Part shown: piece after piece, positions 29,993 to 36,783 of the stretch
Position numbering within the stretch: position 1 is the first letter of the stretch
Layout of the letters: each line of letters starts with the position of its first letter
Sequence record: MF360958.1
DNA: 64,000 bases
Strand: one strand, 5' to 3'
Translations under genes and position numbers: made by a program
The notes under the pieces: generated by a model
Told to the model about the DNA's origin: nothing
What the model saw: the letters and a program-made list of their open reading frames with translations, nothing else
The model's database searches: none

Positions 29993-32077
29993 TTAATAAA
30001 CTGGTAGTGGCGGAACATAATCATCATCTTCGTCATCATCCCCATTACCTGTAATCCCCAACTGATCCATAAATTCATCATCTTCTTTCATCGTTTCCAT
30101 AGCCATTCGTATACAAATTACCATAGCCATAACCAAATCATCATGTTCACCCGTAGATGCCGCATACGTATTCCCACGACGAACAAAATGTTGCATTTGC
30201 TCAAGCAAAGGACGACTGCTAACTTCTAGTTTTTCGTTCTCAACCCAACTCTTTAAACGCATACAAGCAGTATGTTTACTTTCCTTGTTGGTATTATAAC
30301 CTTTACGGAAACGATTTCTTTGCCCCTTGCGCATTGGATTGTAGGGTTCACTCATAAAGTATCCAAAGAAATTGTCTTCACCGTACTCATCAATCAATAC
30401 CAATGGCGCTTCACCAACTGTATTGTTTTCAAGCGTCCAACGAACATTGTCTTCCTCAAATCCAGCTTCTTCAAACATATCCAATATACGTCTAAGTATC
30501 TTCAACTGTTCAGGCACATCACTTTTATTGTGCATCCATTCACCAACCTGAACCATTGTGGGGAATTCAAAAATTTGTATTGCAGAATAATCACCACCTG
30601 TACCCAAACTTGGATCATAACCAATCAGGTAAATATAATCCTTACTTAGTTCTTTGTACCAACGTATTTCGCCCTTACTTTTAGCAATTGGACTTTTCGT
30701 TTCAAGATTAGCCAGCTTTACCGCATTAATGAGTGTTTCTTCTTCTGATATGAATTCTAATTCATGCTCACGTAAGAAATATTCTTCACCGAACTGTCTA
30801 ATCTGATCGTATTTGTATTCTTCATCACGTTCAGGATGTTCATCCCATTTTACCTTCAATGCTTTAAAACCATTCACTCCAACTTCCATATCATTGCCAT
30901 AATCATCAATGGTCTTGTTCGCCAACTTCCACATGTTTGCAAATAGTGTATCATCGGTAGTAGGTGTGGTGGTGATAATACATTTACCACCTGTATTACT
31001 ACCTAAAATACCATTTTGTAAGAATGTATGGGTATGAGGAACCGTGAAATCATATGTAAAGTCTTGATAAGATTTTTCAATACGAGTTATTGTTAACCAT
31101 TGTGTTTCATACTTTTGATTACACTTAAATATTTGAATAGCTTGTTTATTCACACGATATTCATAGTTGAAATTGTTCAACATTTGAACAAATATACTTA
31201 ATGCATGTTCGTTCCATTTTGGAATAATATAACCGCGTGTTTCGATAAATCGATCCAAAGTACGTCTGGTTATGTTCATATAATACTCTGGATTGTTTTC
31301 AAAGTTACGATCTATATCATGAGGACTGACTTCAAGATCCCCTTCAATATTCATACCACGATCAATACGTAAGAACATTCCTGTGTTTAACTGTTCAGCA
31401 GGAATCATTCGTGCATTATCATTAATGTTTCTTCGACTGTATAAAGGATGATCAGGCGTAACTTCAACAATTTGACCATTTTCTAATCGTATTCGATATG
31501 TTTCAGAGGCAGGTGAAACATAACCATGAGAAACATCTTCGATACCACGTTTACCCCAAACCTTGAGATTATCAATCTCGAAATATTCACCAATAGAACG
31601 ATTTTCAAAATAATTGTCTATCTTTTCAAAACCATTGTCGGTCAGAATAATCGTGCCCGGAGCCAAGCATGAAATAGTAGGATAAATGGATGCCCAAAAC
31701 TTTGTCGCAATATTCTTACGGACGAAAGCAAATTCGTCACACTGAGATACATTCCCGCCATTGGCGTATATAGTATTTGAATCGGATTCGTATATATCAT
31801 ACGTATCTTCTAAGAAATCGTATTTTATAGAAGATATCTTTTCATAACCATTGATTGTTTCTATATATTGACCAACGGAAAGATTATAAGCAGGAATTTT
31901 TTCATTATTAATAATGAATTCGTGATCGGTAGTACAATGTATTTCACGATTGGTTTCAGTAGTAATGCGATAGGTATGTTTGTTACTGGATGGATTTTTA
32001 ATAACACCTTTAAAATTCTCCCAACCGTGTTGAGTCTCGATTTCGTATTTGTCATTTTCAATAAAAAACTGATTCAT
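29993..32077 (-). CDS. gp17: Large terminase, C-terminal half (Walker B to nuclease), preceded by a split-intein C-fragment and containing a second intein
   Basis: CDEFAFV Walker B, IITTTP, FLREHELEF, YLIGYDPSLGTGGDYSA, ENN..G, HDDLVMA; no Walker A half in the window; own CATAAATA promoter and GAGGG RBS. Confidence 0.9.
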   Translation of the reverse strand: MNQFFIENDKYEIETQHGWENFKGVIKNPSSNKHTYRITTETNREIHCTTDHEFIINNEKIPAYNLSVGQYIETINGYEKISSIKYDFLEDTYDIYESDSNTIYANGGNVSQCDEFAFVRKNIATKFWASIYPTISCLAPGTIILTDNGFEKIDNYFENRSIGEYFEIDNLKVWGKRGIEDVSHGYVSPASETYRIRLENGQIVEVTPDHPLYSRRNINDNARMIPAEQLNTGMFLRIDRGMNIEGDLEVSPHDIDRNFENNPEYYMNITRRTLDRFIETRGYIIPKWNEHALSIFVQMLNNFNYEYRVNKQAIQIFKCNQKYETQWLTITRIEKSYQDFTYDFTVPHTHTFLQNGILGSNTGGKCIITTTPTTDDTLFANMWKLANKTIDDYGNDMEVGVNGFKALKVKWDEHPERDEEYKYDQIRQFGEEYFLREHELEFISEEETLINAVKLANLETKSPIAKSKGEIRWYKELSKDYIYLIGYDPSLGTGGDYSAIQIFEFPTMVQVGEWMHNKSDVPEQLKILRRILDMFEEAGFEEDNVRWTLENNTVGEAPLVLIDEYGEDNFFGYFMSEPYNPMRKGQRNRFRKGYNTNKESKHTACMRLKSWVENEKLEVSSRPLLEQMQHFVRRGNTYAASTGEHDDLVMAMVICIRMAMETMKEDDEFMDQLGITGNGDDDEDDDYVPPLPVY
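30995..31669 (-). mobile_element. Contiguous intein in TerL (225 aa) with a shrunken endonuclease remnant
   Basis: Starts CLAPGT after YPTIS, block B VTPDHPL, ends YDFTVPHTHTFLQNGILGSN followed by Thr. Confidence 0.9.
31742..32077 (-). mobile_element. Intein C-fragment (112 aa) of an atypically split intein, ending in Gln
   Basis: No block A; has EIETQHGWENFKG, block B CTTDHEF, block F/G YDIYE...YANGGNVSQ followed by Cys. Confidence 0.8.
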
Positions 32078-32130
32078 AATTCCCTCATATATTTTCTTAT
32101 ATGAATATTTATGAATTATGAATCAGTTTT
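32065..32130 (-). promoter_or_regulatory. Perfect 18-bp inverted repeat covering the terL start codon, with a late promoter (32106-32113) between the arms
   Basis: AAAACTGATTCATAATTC (32065-32082) and GAATTATGAATCAGTTTT (32113-32130). Confidence 0.85.
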
Positions 32131-32160: not shown

Positions 32161-33186
32161 TTAATCATTTACATATTTTTTACCTTTCTCTCTAAATTTA
32201 TAAAAAGGTTTCATTTTCTCAAGTAACCCGGCTCTTTCAAGAACTTTCATACTGGAATGACCAATATTGTTTTTATGGTCCTCATTAATAATATCGAAAA
32301 TGATATTAAATTCAGTCGAAGATTCTTGCTCTGTATAACCGGTCATAGTTAGCAATTCATTTTTAGTAATACTGCTTGAGTTGTTCTTTTTATTATTTTC
32401 TGATTTTGTTAGTAGTTGAAGATTGTTAACATCTCCTACACATATTGGGGATATGCTCTCATTCCATCCATTAACAATACTGAACATATGGTCAATTTGA
32501 TAACCATCGTCTTCATCTGTCATCTTGGAAAGTTTTTCACCTTTTGCTACGTAATCTTTTACATATTTAAGTAAGAATTCTATGATACGTTCATAACGTT
32601 GAAACGGTAGGGTCCACGATTGATGCCCATACTTTTCAGCTTTAGTCTGATTGCCTTTGACGATACTTTCCGAAGCAATTTGTTGATAACCGTTACGACC
32701 ATATTCATCTTTTTTGGAAAGATGGGTATTGCGTGTTTTCTCTCCCAACATATCATAGCGACGTTTACCGGTTTCGGGATCGACTTCATTCAACGTTTCC
32801 ATCTTTTTCTTATGAGAGACATCGTACTTGGACATATGGTTACCATTCTCATCTAAGACAGGATTGCCTTGATCGTCATACGCCATTTCTTTTAAACCAC
32901 CTGAAATCTTTTTACTGAGACATTCAGCTACTTTCCCTTTCATTTCGGGACACAGTTCATAGTATTCTTCCTGAGTGATTCCAAGTGTCTTTTCAATATG
33001 TGGTTTACGGATCTTAGTGAATCGTACTTGAGCGATAGGACAGATGATATAGTCGATATCTTCTTGAGAGTCAGGATGATAAAGACCATCCGCTTCGCGT
33101 TTACGCTGGCGTCTATCCAGTTCTTTTAATTTTTGAGATTGTGCTTGACGGATTTGGGTGATTCGTTGTATAGTATTCTCGTTCAT
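32161..33186 (-). CDS. Free-standing HNH-type homing endonuclease
   Basis: N-terminal DYIICPI...H..G.T.EEY..P zinc-finger-like part; C-terminal YQIDHMFSIVNG...NNLQLLTKSENNKK. Confidence 0.7.
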   Translation of the reverse strand: MNENTIQRITQIRQAQSQKLKELDRRQRKREADGLYHPDSQEDIDYIICPIAQVRFTKIRKPHIEKTLGITQEEYYELCPEMKGKVAECLSKKISGGLKEMAYDDQGNPVLDENGNHMSKYDVSHKKKMETLNEVDPETGKRRYDMLGEKTRNTHLSKKDEYGRNGYQQIASESIVKGNQTKAEKYGHQSWTLPFQRYERIIEFLLKYVKDYVAKGEKLSKMTDEDDGYQIDHMFSIVNGWNESISPICVGDVNNLQLLTKSENNKKNNSSSITKNELLTMTGYTEQESSTEFNIIFDIINEDHKNNIGHSSMKVLERAGLLEKMKPFYKFREKGKKYVND

Positions 33187-33416: not shown

Positions 33417-34475
33417 ATGAGTACCAGCTTAGACGAATACTTTCAAAATAGTGATGAATCTACTCGCGAACAAATTCTTGAGAACATTATCTTTGAAAAT
33501 CATGGATATAGTAACCATGATTTAACAAAAATTAGTCTCAATAATTATTACATTAAAAAGATTATTGATGGTGATATTAATAATAATACGAGAGCGAGTA
33601 TTTTTGGCATTATTTCCTTAATGTTTGCATTAGGTGAAAGCCTATGTGATGAAACATGGAAAATGGTATTTGAGAAAAAGCCTCGTTGTTTAATGGTGTA
33701 TCCTCAAGCGCGTTCAAAACCGTTGAAAGATGATATTATTGAGTATGGTTTAAGAAAATATTATGAACATGGCGAAAAAGTCTTAAACTCTTTTCCAGAT
33801 AGTCATTGTATTAAAGAGATTTTTGAAATTCAGAAATCCGTTAATGATGAATTCTATAAAATCATTATTGATAATGAGCCGGATCTTATTCCATTTTTGG
33901 AAGATTTACCACAATCGATTATCGATTATTTTGTTAATCTGATGAATGACAATGGCTATGGTTATGATTTTTCAAACATTAACGACTATAGTGAAGATGT
34001 ACTTTGTGAAATCATAGAAGCATTTCCTTTTGCGTATATTCTTATTTCTAATCCTAGTGATGAAATTAATAAGATAATGATTGATCATAATATATTTTAC
34101 ATAAAAATTTTAAGAAATCAAACAGATAATTTCTATTCATACGTACTAGATAAAGAAATACGACGTGTGGATATTTTTAAAAGTTTTGTTAATCCTTCAA
34201 AAGAGGTTCAATATAAAGCTATTGGTATGAATCCCTCTTCAATATCGCATGTTAGCGATCCTGATGAACATTCTCAGCAATTAGCTATTGAATACAATCC
34301 TGAAAATATTGTGTATATAGATGCTCCTTATGAGCATATACTGTTAAAAGCGTTAAAAACTGAATGGAATGTGTCTGTATATGAGATTGTTTGTAATAAT
34401 ATCCAAAATTATAGTGATGAATTCAGGCATTACTTTAACAAGTTAAAACTGGAACGAGGCATTCCGGTAGGCTAA
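33417..34475 (+). CDS. Helical-repeat protein, KLKL-tail family member 3
   Basis: NPS.E.Q..A repeats; W...Y...FRHYFNKLKLERG; TTGAAA-N18-TATGAT promoter upstream. Confidence 0.8.
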   Translation: MSTSLDEYFQNSDESTREQILENIIFENHGYSNHDLTKISLNNYYIKKIIDGDINNNTRASIFGIISLMFALGESLCDETWKMVFEKKPRCLMVYPQARSKPLKDDIIEYGLRKYYEHGEKVLNSFPDSHCIKEIFEIQKSVNDEFYKIIIDNEPDLIPFLEDLPQSIIDYFVNLMNDNGYGYDFSNINDYSEDVLCEIIEAFPFAYILISNPSDEINKIMIDHNIFYIKILRNQTDNFYSYVLDKEIRRVDIFKSFVNPSKEVQYKAIGMNPSSISHVSDPDEHSQQLAIEYNPENIVYIDAPYEHILLKALKTEWNVSVYEIVCNNIQNYSDEFRHYFNKLKLERGIPVG

Positions 34476-34499
34476 TATTGCGACTATAAGAGAAATTAT

Positions 34500-35597
34500 A
34501 TGGAACATGATACGACACTTAACGATTATTTTTATTCTTGTGATGAAAAACAACGTGTGAGAATTCTTCATGATATTATTTTTGAAGATAACGGGTACTA
34601 CTGTGATGACCTTAGAAAGATTGATCTAAATGAACATTATATTAACAAAATTATCGAGTTTAACAGTACCGTATCCACGATAAACTTAATAACTACTGTT
34701 CCTGTAAGCAAACTGACTGACAATAATTTAAAGAATATATTCAAACATAACCATCGTTTCATAAAAGTATATTCTTATATATTTGAGAAACCGCTTTCCG
34801 AAGATGTTTTTCAATATGCATTACAATGTTCTTTCGATAATGGTGAAGTTATAGCAGATCATCCAGATCCAGATTATTTAGATAATGATATAAGGCGATT
34901 TATATCACTTCATGAACCTATTAGTGATGATTCAAAAAAGATTATTATTAAAAACAATATAGTATACTTACCATTTTTAGAAGGTTTGTCTGAATCTGTG
35001 AAAGAGTTTACATGTGGGTTTGTTAAAAATAACATAGATTCAAAATACGATTATAGAAATATCAATAAATTTTCTCAGGATGTTCAATGCGATATTGTAC
35101 GTCAATATCCCTATCTGTATGAACTAATTGATAATCCTAGCGAAGCTGTTAATCGAGAGTTGATTGAAGCAGATCCTTATTGGATTAGTGTTGTCAATAA
35201 TCAAACGGGTGATTTACAATTAAGGGCGCTGTATATACTTTATGGAAGTAATGGTATTATTGGTACGCCCATATTTTCTTTTTTCAAGAATCCTTGTAAA
35301 AATGTTCAATATGAAGCAGTACGGTTGGATCCAATTCAAATATCGTTGATTAAAGATCCAAATTATGATATGCAGAAATTAGCAGTTGAGCATAATCCAG
35401 ACTGTATTAAACATATCAAACATCCTTATGAAGATATTGCGCGTGTTGTATTAGATAGTGGTTATTGGAATGCTAGAATATATGATGTTATTAAAGATAA
35501 CATTCATCAATATAGCAATGAATTTAATCATTATTTTAATAAATTAAAGTTGAAATATGGTGATCCTAATAATTTCACAGAAAGATCTACTAAATGA
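34500..35597 (+). CDS. Helical-repeat protein, KLKL-tail family member 4
   Basis: Paralog of 33417; FNHYFNKLKLKYG. Confidence 0.8.
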   Translation: MEHDTTLNDYFYSCDEKQRVRILHDIIFEDNGYYCDDLRKIDLNEHYINKIIEFNSTVSTINLITTVPVSKLTDNNLKNIFKHNHRFIKVYSYIFEKPLSEDVFQYALQCSFDNGEVIADHPDPDYLDNDIRRFISLHEPISDDSKKIIIKNNIVYLPFLEGLSESVKEFTCGFVKNNIDSKYDYRNINKFSQDVQCDIVRQYPYLYELIDNPSEAVNRELIEADPYWISVVNNQTGDLQLRALYILYGSNGIIGTPIFSFFKNPCKNVQYEAVRLDPIQISLIKDPNYDMQKLAVEHNPDCIKHIKHPYEDIARVVLDSGYWNARIYDVIKDNIHQYSNEFNHYFNKLKLKYGDPNNFTERSTK

Positions 35598-35661
35598 TAT
35601 AGGTTGAATAAAGAAGATGAACAATGGTTCAAACATCAGGTTAACAAACAGAAATTAGAGA

Positions 35662-36783
35662 ATGAATTTTATGACTAATATAAGATTGCATAGAGAATTA
35701 ACCGAATTAAATAATTTTTTCAATAATAGCGATGTAATATTTCAACATTATTTTTTGGATAAAATTATTCACCAAATTGATAGTTATAAAGACGACCTAC
35801 TTTCATATGTTGATTTGAGTGATTATTATCAAAAACAAATAATTGATTGTAAGTTGTATAGATCAGATATATTCGCATCATTTAGTAATCTTAACGGTAT
35901 CTATATTGCGCATCATTTTAAAAATTTAACACAAGATAATATATGTTATATGATTGATAAGAATCCATTGCCTTCTTTTATCATACATCATGTTTCAATA
36001 AAAGATGAGAACGTGTTAAAATATTGTTTACAACGTTTTCTGAAATCTTCAAAAAATAGAAGTATTGAATACTGCTCTGATGGTATGTTTGAAAAAATTC
36101 TGCAACAACATTACCCTGTATCTGAAGATATACAACTATTAATTATACACTACTATCCTCGATTTATTATTCATTTTGATGTTGATGATCTCTACCCAAG
36201 TGTATTGAATAAGTTTTATGAAATCATGGGTAAAAAATCGAGTATTGATTTTCGAAATATTAATGATTATCAAGAAAATGCTTTATCTGGTATTGTCTTT
36301 CAATATCCTTTTATATATAAATTTATAAAAAATAAAACATATTTAATCAATAATTCGTTTATTCAAAATGATCCTGATAATATTCGATTCATTGATAATT
36401 CTAGTGAAGACTTACAATTAATGAGTGTTAGAATCAGTGGATGTATTACGTTAGATTATCATTGTAATTCGTTACGTCATATTAATAATCCGTCTGAAAA
36501 TGTTATATGGAAAGCTATTAAATCGAATACTAGATGTATAGAATATGCTATTAATCCTAGTTATGAAATGCAAAAATATTGTATCAAAAGAAATCCTTAT
36601 AGTATAGTTTATATCAAGAATACAATACCAGAAGATTTACAGTTAATTGCTCTGGAAAATTTATGGAATATAGAAAATTATAATCATATATTAAATAATT
36701 TAGGTCCGCACAGTGATTATTTCAATCATGAACTAAAAAAATTAAAGTTAAAAAATGGATATATTGAGGATGGTACTGAATAA
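35662..36783 (+). CDS. Helical-repeat protein, KLKL-tail family member 5
   Basis: LQLIALENLW...Y...FNHELKKLKLKNG. Confidence 0.8.
   Translation: MNFMTNIRLHRELTELNNFFNNSDVIFQHYFLDKIIHQIDSYKDDLLSYVDLSDYYQKQIIDCKLYRSDIFASFSNLNGIYIAHHFKNLTQDNICYMIDKNPLPSFIIHHVSIKDENVLKYCLQRFLKSSKNRSIEYCSDGMFEKILQQHYPVSEDIQLLIIHYYPRFIIHFDVDDLYPSVLNKFYEIMGKKSSIDFRNINDYQENALSGIVFQYPFIYKFIKNKTYLINNSFIQNDPDNIRFIDNSSEDLQLMSVRISGCITLDYHCNSLRHINNPSENVIWKAIKSNTRCIEYAINPSYEMQKYCIKRNPYSIVYIKNTIPEDLQLIALENLWNIENYNHILNNLGPHSDYFNHELKKLKLKNGYIEDGTE

Follow-up and report, generated by a model that had tools for sequence, protein, structure and literature searches.

Three dispersed genes of Salicola phage SCTP-2 that very probably encode one large terminase joined by two split inteins

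The stretch of DNA analysed here (64,000 nucleotides of sequence record MF360958.1, called the window as a whole, window positions being record positions minus 186,000) belongs to Salicola phage SCTP-2, a jumbo phage of 440,001 bp known as a cultured isolate from an Italian saltern; over 5 kb around the intein fragment described below, the identity to the record of this phage is 100%. It contains gene 224, an open reading frame (ORF) of 694 residues on the minus strand (29993..32077), whose product begins MNQFFIENDKYEIETQHGWENFKG and which the record labels "terminase large subunit". We concluded that the large terminase (TerL) of SCTP-2 is very probably encoded as three separate pieces, of which gene 224 is the third, and that these would be joined by two split inteins, each consisting of an N-terminal fragment (IntN) and a C-terminal fragment (IntC). 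We infer splicing from the intact catalytic residues, the exact tiling of the pieces along the enzyme, their conservation and the viability of the phage.

Gene 224 starts inside an intein. Its residues 1-112, which correspond exactly to window 31742..32077 (minus strand), are the C-fragment of a split intein inserted at Walker B, which we call IntC2. Residues 23-102 align with positions 39-118 of the 155 positions of the Pfam model Intein_splicing (E 6.8e-7, under the gathering score as it is a fragment). The match starts only at position 39 of the model; therefore block A is absent from IntC2 while the core is present. When aligned with contiguous relatives, the fragment begins right after blocks A and N2, both of which it lacks, and it holds block B (CTTDH), N4, F and G. 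Its final residues are NGGNVSQ, and CDEFAF follows from residue 113. The latter motif is aligned with LDEMAF in the uninterrupted PA5oct terminase (531 residues, reading ...SISLVYLDEMAF... at the break), to which gene 224 is 47% identical; likewise ...MIYI(D/E)(E/D) of T4 gp17 is aligned with ...SLLYC(D)(E) of SCTP-2. Taken together, these two alignments place the break within Walker B, one residue ahead of the Asp-Glu pair. A first-pass annotation, made from the letters of the window, had described such a fragment without block A but with TTDH and blocks F and G, ending S-Q/C just before the Walker B motif CDEFAF (the slash marks a splice junction), with an atypically early split and at a site differing from that of the intein AceL-TerL, which is empty here (REHELEF). 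All this was borne out by Pfam and by the alignments. The extein resumes with 24 residues, CDEFAFVRKNIATKFWASIYPTIS (31670..31741, minus strand), which include Cys+1 and the Asp-Glu of Walker B, and after a contiguous cis-intein it goes on for 333 residues and the stop (29993..30994, minus strand). This last segment covers the remaining ATPase domain and the RNase H-like nuclease domain; it matches Terminase_6C in Pfam, and PHROG terminase families are matched as well.

Two more coding sequences, genes 534 and 267, are annotated in the SCTP-2 record as "terminase large subunit". The first piece, gene 534 (record 429356-429748, minus strand, 130 residues), consists of TerL residues 1-87 (...NMLARQLGK), stopping at the P-loop lysine, and of a 43-residue fragment IntN1 (CVDYETNITV...NEPD, followed by the stop). 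The second, gene 267 (record 256428-257321, plus strand, 297 residues), reads MTTKF...YYTNGILSHN/TAVAALYLL...GRGLSISLLY/CLDGETTVKLRDKESGEV...DIDYI before its stop; it is made of a 115-residue IntC1 ending SHN, of 87 TerL residues (88-174, TAVAAL...SISLLY), of a 31-residue IntN2 starting CLDGETTV and of a 64-residue tail. The third, gene 224 (record position 215,993, minus strand), contributes IntC2, the sequence CDEFAF...YPTIS, the cis-intein, and TGGKC... up to the C-terminal end. Gene 267 is located 6.4 kb past the end of the window, about 38 kb from gene 224 and on the opposite strand, and gene 534 about 211 kb away.

The three pieces tile one terminase. When the PA5oct terminase is compared to the whole SCTP-2 genome with tblastn, its residues 16-94 match gene 534, 94-180 match gene 267, and 181-216 and 204-505 match gene 224, without gap or overlap, and no further terminase copy is found in the genome. 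The extein lengths (87+87+24+333) add up to 531 residues, which is the length of the PA5oct enzyme. The middle extein matches the ATPase of T4 gp17 (E 6e-9), and Walker A, Walker B, the coupling motif and the RNase H-like nuclease domain are all present, colinear with known T4 gp17-type (Terminase_6) members. In the window the same query matches gene 224 only, in agreement with the first-pass annotation, which had reported no terminase N-half there and had proposed, as the test of its reading, to look for an IntN-bearing partner elsewhere in the genome. Genes 534 and 267 are such partners. Its proposal that the enzyme is assembled from two distant genes is thus right as to distance but not as to number, as there are three genes, with a second split intein at Walker A and the cis-intein in addition.

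The junction residues of the three inteins are intact: Cys1, block B Ala-Asp-Asp-His and His-Asn/Thr in intein 1 (genes 534/267); Cys1, block B Thr-Thr-Asp-His and Gln/Cys in intein 2 (genes 267/224); Cys1, Thr-Pro-Asp-His and Ser-Asn/Thr in intein 3, the cis-intein. In intein 2 the nucleophile is Cys203 of gene 267, which comes after ...SISLLY and is invariant in 20 homologues, and the other junction is Gln112/Cys113 at the end of IntC2, as in class 1 inteins. IntN2 and the 112-residue IntC2, which carries blocks B, F and G, are on separate genes 38 kb apart, as in atypically split inteins. The following course of events can be proposed. The three genes would be transcribed late, each from a motif described below; the short IntN peptides would fit into IntC partners that are long and almost complete, as in the atypically split AceL-TerL, GOS-TerL and Cat; class-1 splicing would restore the P-loop (GK-T) and Walker B (LLY-CDE). 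In intein 2 this would involve a thioester at Cys1, transfer to Cys+1, cyclisation of the terminal Gln and an S-to-N acyl shift. The cis-intein of gene 224 would excise itself, and the end product would be a terminase of 531 residues, as long as the uninterrupted PA5oct enzyme.

Several points weigh against splicing by these two pairs. IntC2 of SCTP-2 has neither of the histidines that assist cyclisation: Ser111 occupies position G:6, and Asn occupies F:13, where relatives have His (SDSNTIYAN compared to SxSHTILAN). With a Gln to be cyclised and the helper His absent, the last step may be slow. IntN1 and IntN2 are 50% identical over 24 residues, and IntC1 and IntC2 show 27% identity (E 1e-5), so that mis-pairing is conceivable, including cyclisation of the middle piece. 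Moreover, the only match to gene 534 in a metagenome scan was an unrelated P-loop protein that ends in a similar short IntN, which leaves the family of the N-piece unsampled in relatives. As to the histidines, splicing is known to tolerate, in characterised inteins, either a C-terminal Gln or a missing penultimate His, and about 5% of functional inteins do without the penultimate (G:6) His (PMC4031507). The histidines at G:6 and F:13 are assisting, not obligatory.

The Gln end and the missing F:13 and G:6 histidines of IntC2 would also suit a terminase that works as a non-covalent complex of three chains, held together by intein halves which associate without splicing and to which the tail of gene 267 could supply extra binding surface. 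We consider such a complex improbable. Neither SCTP-2 nor any of the relatives has lost Cys1, the Thr and His of block B, the terminal Gln or Asn, or Cys+1, which is unexpected if the chemistry is dispensable. Besides, the inserts lie within the P-loop and within the Walker B strand, where a HINT domain of over 140 residues, if it stayed in place, is expected to block the assembly of the ATPase, an argument that has been made for terminase inteins (PMC5050341).

Each terminase piece has its own ribosome-binding site (RBS), in gene 224 a Shine-Dalgarno-like GAGGGA (32081..32086, minus strand) located 3 nt from the ATG. A scan for sigma-70 promoters was uninformative (17 sites compared to 18.1 expected from shuffles) and gave none in the 83-nt gap upstream of gene 224. 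Of the promoter and RBS which had been attributed to this gene at first, the RBS therefore stands, and in place of a sigma-70 promoter one can notice a motif resembling the T4 late promoter, whose role is putative. This motif, YATAAATA, precedes each of the three terminase pieces by about 30-50 nt; the copy CATAAATA (32106..32113, minus strand) is found 28 nt 5' of the ATG of gene 224. YATAAATA corresponds to the consensus of T4 late promoters, one base being degenerate. There are 210 such sites on both strands of the 440-kb genome, whose G+C content is 30%, and the chance of meeting one in each of three 60-nt intervals is about 3e-6, for a motif picked after looking. We retain it as a lead only, namely as a candidate late-promoter element of SCTP-2.

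These signals bear on the possibility of an artefact, either a misassembly near window 32080 or a decaying terminase pseudogene which another gene has replaced. The frame of gene 224 does begin abruptly inside a domain, and the record gives the label "terminase large subunit" to three fragments without comment. Yet independent metagenome assemblies agree on the starts and ends of the middle and C-terminal pieces, an RBS and a late-promoter-like motif accompany each piece, the SCTP-2 genome has no other terminase homologue, and the phage has been isolated in culture. An artefact or a pseudogene is thus extremely improbable.

The same arrangement recurs in relatives. Gene 224 has at least 20 metagenomic orthologues (692-713 residues, 42-62% identity), some of them on scaffolds of 440-460 kb, all of which begin with IntC2 and carry a matching cis-intein. 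For gene 267 we found 20 metagenomic homologues of 296-310 residues with an identical three-part layout, in which Cys1 and His-Asn-Thr are invariant, and its neighbourhood is matched in independent assemblies. We then describe the intein family at large by a HMMER scan of 1.84 billion representatives with IntC2 and 24 extein residues (136 residues in all), which gave 519 matches at E<=1e-3 and 125 at E<=1e-10. Counts were made on the 66 representative clusters with a clean junction, Gln or Asn before CDE. The gene product starts with IntC, split at the same place, in 53 of them and the intein is internal in the other 13; Cys is at +1 in all 66. The last intein residue is Asn in 44 clusters (23 Lys-Asn, 10 His-Asn, 7 Ser-Asn, and others) and Gln in 22 (21 His-Gln and one Phe-Gln). 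The Thr-x-x-His of block B is kept in the gene 224 orthologues and throughout the family. Among these orthologues IntC2 ends in VLQ, VVQ, NLQ, VSQ, SHQ, SSN, SKN or TAN; the first four endings mean that Gln without a penultimate His is recurrent in the SCTP-2-like clade. These counts show a Walker-B intein family that is common in metagenomes and mostly split at the place where IntC2 starts. The arrangement of SCTP-2 is not unique, and the first-pass annotation was mistaken in taking the Gln end for rare. Among 50,697 phage records, SCTP-2 is the only one with the Walker-B split intein, and a scan of IMG/VR with IntC2 found no relative.

Contiguous mini-inteins of 133-146 residues at the same Walker-B site (P0040, P0055, P0101 and P0118) align end to end with residues 1-31 of IntN2 followed by IntC2. 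In other phages, the N-pieces (P0021, P0022 and P0023) stop after an IntN of 31-35 residues which is close to the first 31 residues of IntN2, as in CLDGETTVKLRNKITGEIKEVSLLELYNELD followed by the stop. Gene 267 behaves differently. Its partner role had been predicted to involve a Cys, 15-35 further residues and a stop; what we found is the 31 residues of IntN2, homologous to other IntN fragments, after which the ORF runs on for 64 residues of a degenerate copy of the HINT core. All 20 homologues of gene 267 run on in this way for about 64 conserved residues, with an invariant Phe, Glu and Lys-Thr-Thr-x-Glu and a conserved Gly-Asp-x-Ile-Leu. In a profile-profile comparison with hhalign, residues 9-64 of the tail align with residues 32-87 of IntC2, from block B to N4 (94% probability, E 1.4e-7), with a score of 39.6, the maximum over 30 column shuffles and the reversed alignment being 14.9. 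An AlphaFold model of IntN2 with its tail has a pLDDT (predicted local distance difference test) of about 90 in the tail, and the top 40 PDB matches of this model are all intein or Hedgehog HINT structures, with modest E-values (5e-3 and weaker); Pfam gives no match to IntN2 and tail. The conserved His and Thr of block B are missing from the tail, as is the hairpin preceding them (YEILTPxGW), and the His found in VPEHQ of SCTP-2 is not conserved. Such a tail is absent from the contiguous relatives and from the N-pieces of other lineages. Since it is homologous to the core and has lost the catalytic residues, we concluded that the tail is a dead duplicate of the core which IntC2 supplies, so that the two fragments of intein 2 overlap. 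No description of such an overlapping dead-core split was found in the searchable literature.

The homology of the tail to the intein core and its HINT-like predicted fold, together with the fact that IntN2 and tail end where canonical IntN fragments end, could be read in another way: intein 2 would be canonically split, the 95 C-terminal residues of gene 267 (A, N2, a B-like block and N4) working with the last 37 or so residues of IntC2 (F and G), while the first 75 or so residues of gene 224 would be vestigial. This seems to us quite unlikely, as the tail is the copy that has neither the block-B His and Thr nor the hairpin, whereas the copy in IntC2 retains Thr-x-x-His family-wide. Furthermore, the IntN of related phages has only 31-35 residues; therefore the full IntC must be used there.

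If the tail is indeed a dead copy, it may have a function. The middle piece, with IntC1 at one end and a similar IntN at the other, has the layout used for protein cyclisation, and this makes a masking of IntN2 by the tail, or an enforced choice of partner, attractive. SCTP-2 and its relatives of roughly 450 kb could then represent the first natural tandem trans-splicing, one essential enzyme being made from three dispersed genes with two inteins that are homologous but orthogonal to each other, in which the tail would be a cage that keeps IntN2 off IntC1, and thus from cyclisation, and frees it only to IntC2. We offer this as a tentative suggestion, which may well prove wrong. Split inteins "caged" by the fusion of one fragment to an inactive version of the other were reportedly engineered by Gramespacher, Muir and co-workers in 2017. 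The likeness is that IntN is joined, in one chain, to a non-catalytic copy of the sequence to which it would normally bind; the caged inteins are man-made, whereas the masking of IntN2 by a natural tail is conjectural.

Directly upstream of IntC2 lies gene 225 (32161..33186, minus strand), which encodes a free-standing putative homing endonuclease of the HNH type (341 residues, with only a weak Pfam match, to the His-Me finger domain GmrSD_C). It is on the same strand as gene 224 and 83 nt away. Over residues 118-293 it shares 33% identity (E 9e-19) with the N-terminal domain of P0058, which is encoded on a 555-kb phage contig after an N-piece ending in IntN, and in which the endonuclease domain is fused to IntC. 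In other relatives a Vsr-like nuclease is fused at the point between IntN and IntC, and in the closest metagenomic relative an orthologue of gene 225 (51% identity) stands directly upstream of the gene 224 orthologue. Within the Walker-B intein family, the place of the endonuclease is behind the initial 31-40 or so intein residues, which explains the unusual split point. The full order of N-piece, endonuclease and C-piece is present in relatives; the SCTP-2 locus has only the endonuclease and the IntC-extein half, its N-side pieces being dispersed. The succession of genes 225 and 224, compared with these relatives, thus means that SCTP-2 keeps two thirds of a fractured gene, namely its downstream part. 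By analogy with the "fractured gene" model, insertion of the gene 225 endonuclease probably split the Walker-B intein, and the N-terminal pieces would have been relocated later elsewhere in the genome.

AceL-TerL, GOS-TerL and the consensus "Cat" are atypically split terminase inteins (reviewed in PMC11766414; PDB 6dsl), a kind first noted in 2009 (Dassa 2009, PMC2677866). Common to them and to SCTP-2 are a gp17-type terminase as host and an early split, with a short IntN of 25-37 residues (for IntN2 the 31 homologous residues, after which the ORF runs on into the tail) and an IntC of 104-122 residues that has all blocks except the first. The whole of IntC1 can be aligned with the Cat C-fragment (6dsl_B; E 8e-4), and with Foldseek the predicted model of gene 267 matches the inteins VidaL, Cat and gp41-1 and the ATPase of T4 gp17. 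The insertion sites differ. The intein of P0036, at REFE/C...SHN/CEF, matches CatC (E 7e-10) and the PDB chain 6dsl_B runs on as SHA/CES, which would place the AceL/GOS/Cat family at the REFE/CEF site, at the start of the nuclease domain, whereas the sites of SCTP-2 are the P-loop and Walker B. The REFE/CEF site is uninterrupted in SCTP-2 (REHELEF) and occupied by a Cat-like intein in P0035, P0036, PSTRCR_127 and Va1. Three further differences are that SCTP-2 has two such inteins in one protein, that its IntC2 ends in Ser-Gln instead of His-Asn, and that the gene of IntN2 has the 64-residue extension.

In the cultured T4-like phages PSTRCR_127 and Va1, the REFE/CEF intein belongs to fractured genes of the classic type, whose endonucleases are GIY-YIG or Vsr-like. 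SCTP-2 resembles fractured genes (PMC2677866) by its free-standing endonuclease gene immediately upstream of, and on the same strand as, an IntC-extein gene, and its relatives by the order N-piece/endonuclease/C-piece or by endonuclease-IntC fusions; it differs from them in that the N-side pieces are distant and the endonuclease is HNH-like, not GIY-YIG or Vsr-like. The contiguous terminase inteins of mycobacteriophages (Kelley et al. 2016, PMC5050341) occupy the same three hot spots of the ATPase, P-loop, Walker B and C-motif. They belong to other terminase families (mostly Terminase_1) and some are of class 3, while those of SCTP-2 are class-1-like and two are split. Finally, in the inteins of Pab PolII, Mma PolII and CIV RNR (PMC4031507), Gln replaces Asn in cyclisation as it would in IntC2; these are contiguous and have other hosts, whereas in the Walker-B split family Gln is recurrent (the 22 clusters above). 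The SCTP-2 system is therefore a variant within a kind already known, that of terminase inteins with an atypical split; what is new is the tail, a dead core by which the two fragments overlap. Our literature search found no description of a natural protein joined by two split inteins, nor of the SCTP-2 terminase; subscription literature lay outside this search and priority is uncertain.

Other layouts were met among distant genomes. A 6.2-kb metagenome contig (L014:40-5849) has another three-piece layout, with a Vsr-like endonuclease gene first, then a middle piece (IntC1, extein, 31-residue IntN2 and an unrelated 20-residue tail), then about 2.5 kb of small ORFs on the opposite strand and the IntC2-terminase piece (P0025). 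In the cultured 490-kb Agrobacterium phage Atu_ph07 (L017:2501-4692, plus strand), the terminase is split at the P-loop between the adjacent genes gp110 and gp109, which are 11 nt apart with no endonuclease gene between them; the first residue of its IntN is Ser (GK/SVHKSTD...). A P-loop protein other than terminase, on a 321-kb metagenome contig (L022:2548-3234, plus strand), ends in a 32-residue IntN very like IntN1 (...YIGQSNIGK/CVCGDSLITVRNRKTGDIMTIPIGEFFEKIKQ and the stop), which means that atypically split P-loop inteins are not limited to terminases.

The cis-intein of gene 224 (30995..31669, minus strand; 225 residues, CLAPGT...FLQNGILGSN/T; Pfam Intein_splicing at residues 143-358, E 4e-17) is flanked by YPTIS and TGGKCIITTTP, and the TTT ATPase-coupling motif comes shortly after it. 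Its central insert of about 85 residues has no recognisable endonuclease motif. The orthologues P0184 and P0188 keep the LAGLIDADG-like FLRGLY/LANMGI, for which reason the SCTP-2 insert looks like a decayed homing endonuclease. A mini-intein has been reported in the PolB of SCTP-2 (PMC6892783). In the closest metagenomic relative, a RecA/UvsX-like gene of 669 residues (L021:11288-13297, minus strand) has intein and homing-endonuclease HINT matches, which points to a heavy intein load in the SCTP-2 phage clade; in the same relative, a gene with a faint DUF4116 match adjoins the terminase orthologue. Two related jumbo-phage contigs have TnpB/OrfB_IS605 (Cas12f-like) genes within about 10 kb of the terminase pieces (L013:17907-19187 and L016:11700-12923). 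In the window itself, genes 226-228 (33417-36783, plus strand) are tandem paralogues of 352, 365 and 373 residues with common N- and C-terminal motifs (...FNHYFNKLKLK...), and gene 226 has no Pfam match.

Inteins with an atypical split, whose IntN is very short, are sought after as tools to label proteins or to make them by semisynthesis, and only a small number of those found in nature have been studied. The SCTP-2 locus adds two related pairs, both from a phage that infects a halophile and can be cultivated, and in vivo the two pairs must already be orthogonal; it also offers a Gln-ended pair without either helper histidine, and an IntN with a natural dead-core extension. As for the phage, its terminase would be a concrete example of an essential viral enzyme which needs three gene products made together. 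This bears on the way genes may be fractured by homing endonucleases and genome rearrangement, and on splicing as a possible gate for the onset of DNA packaging.

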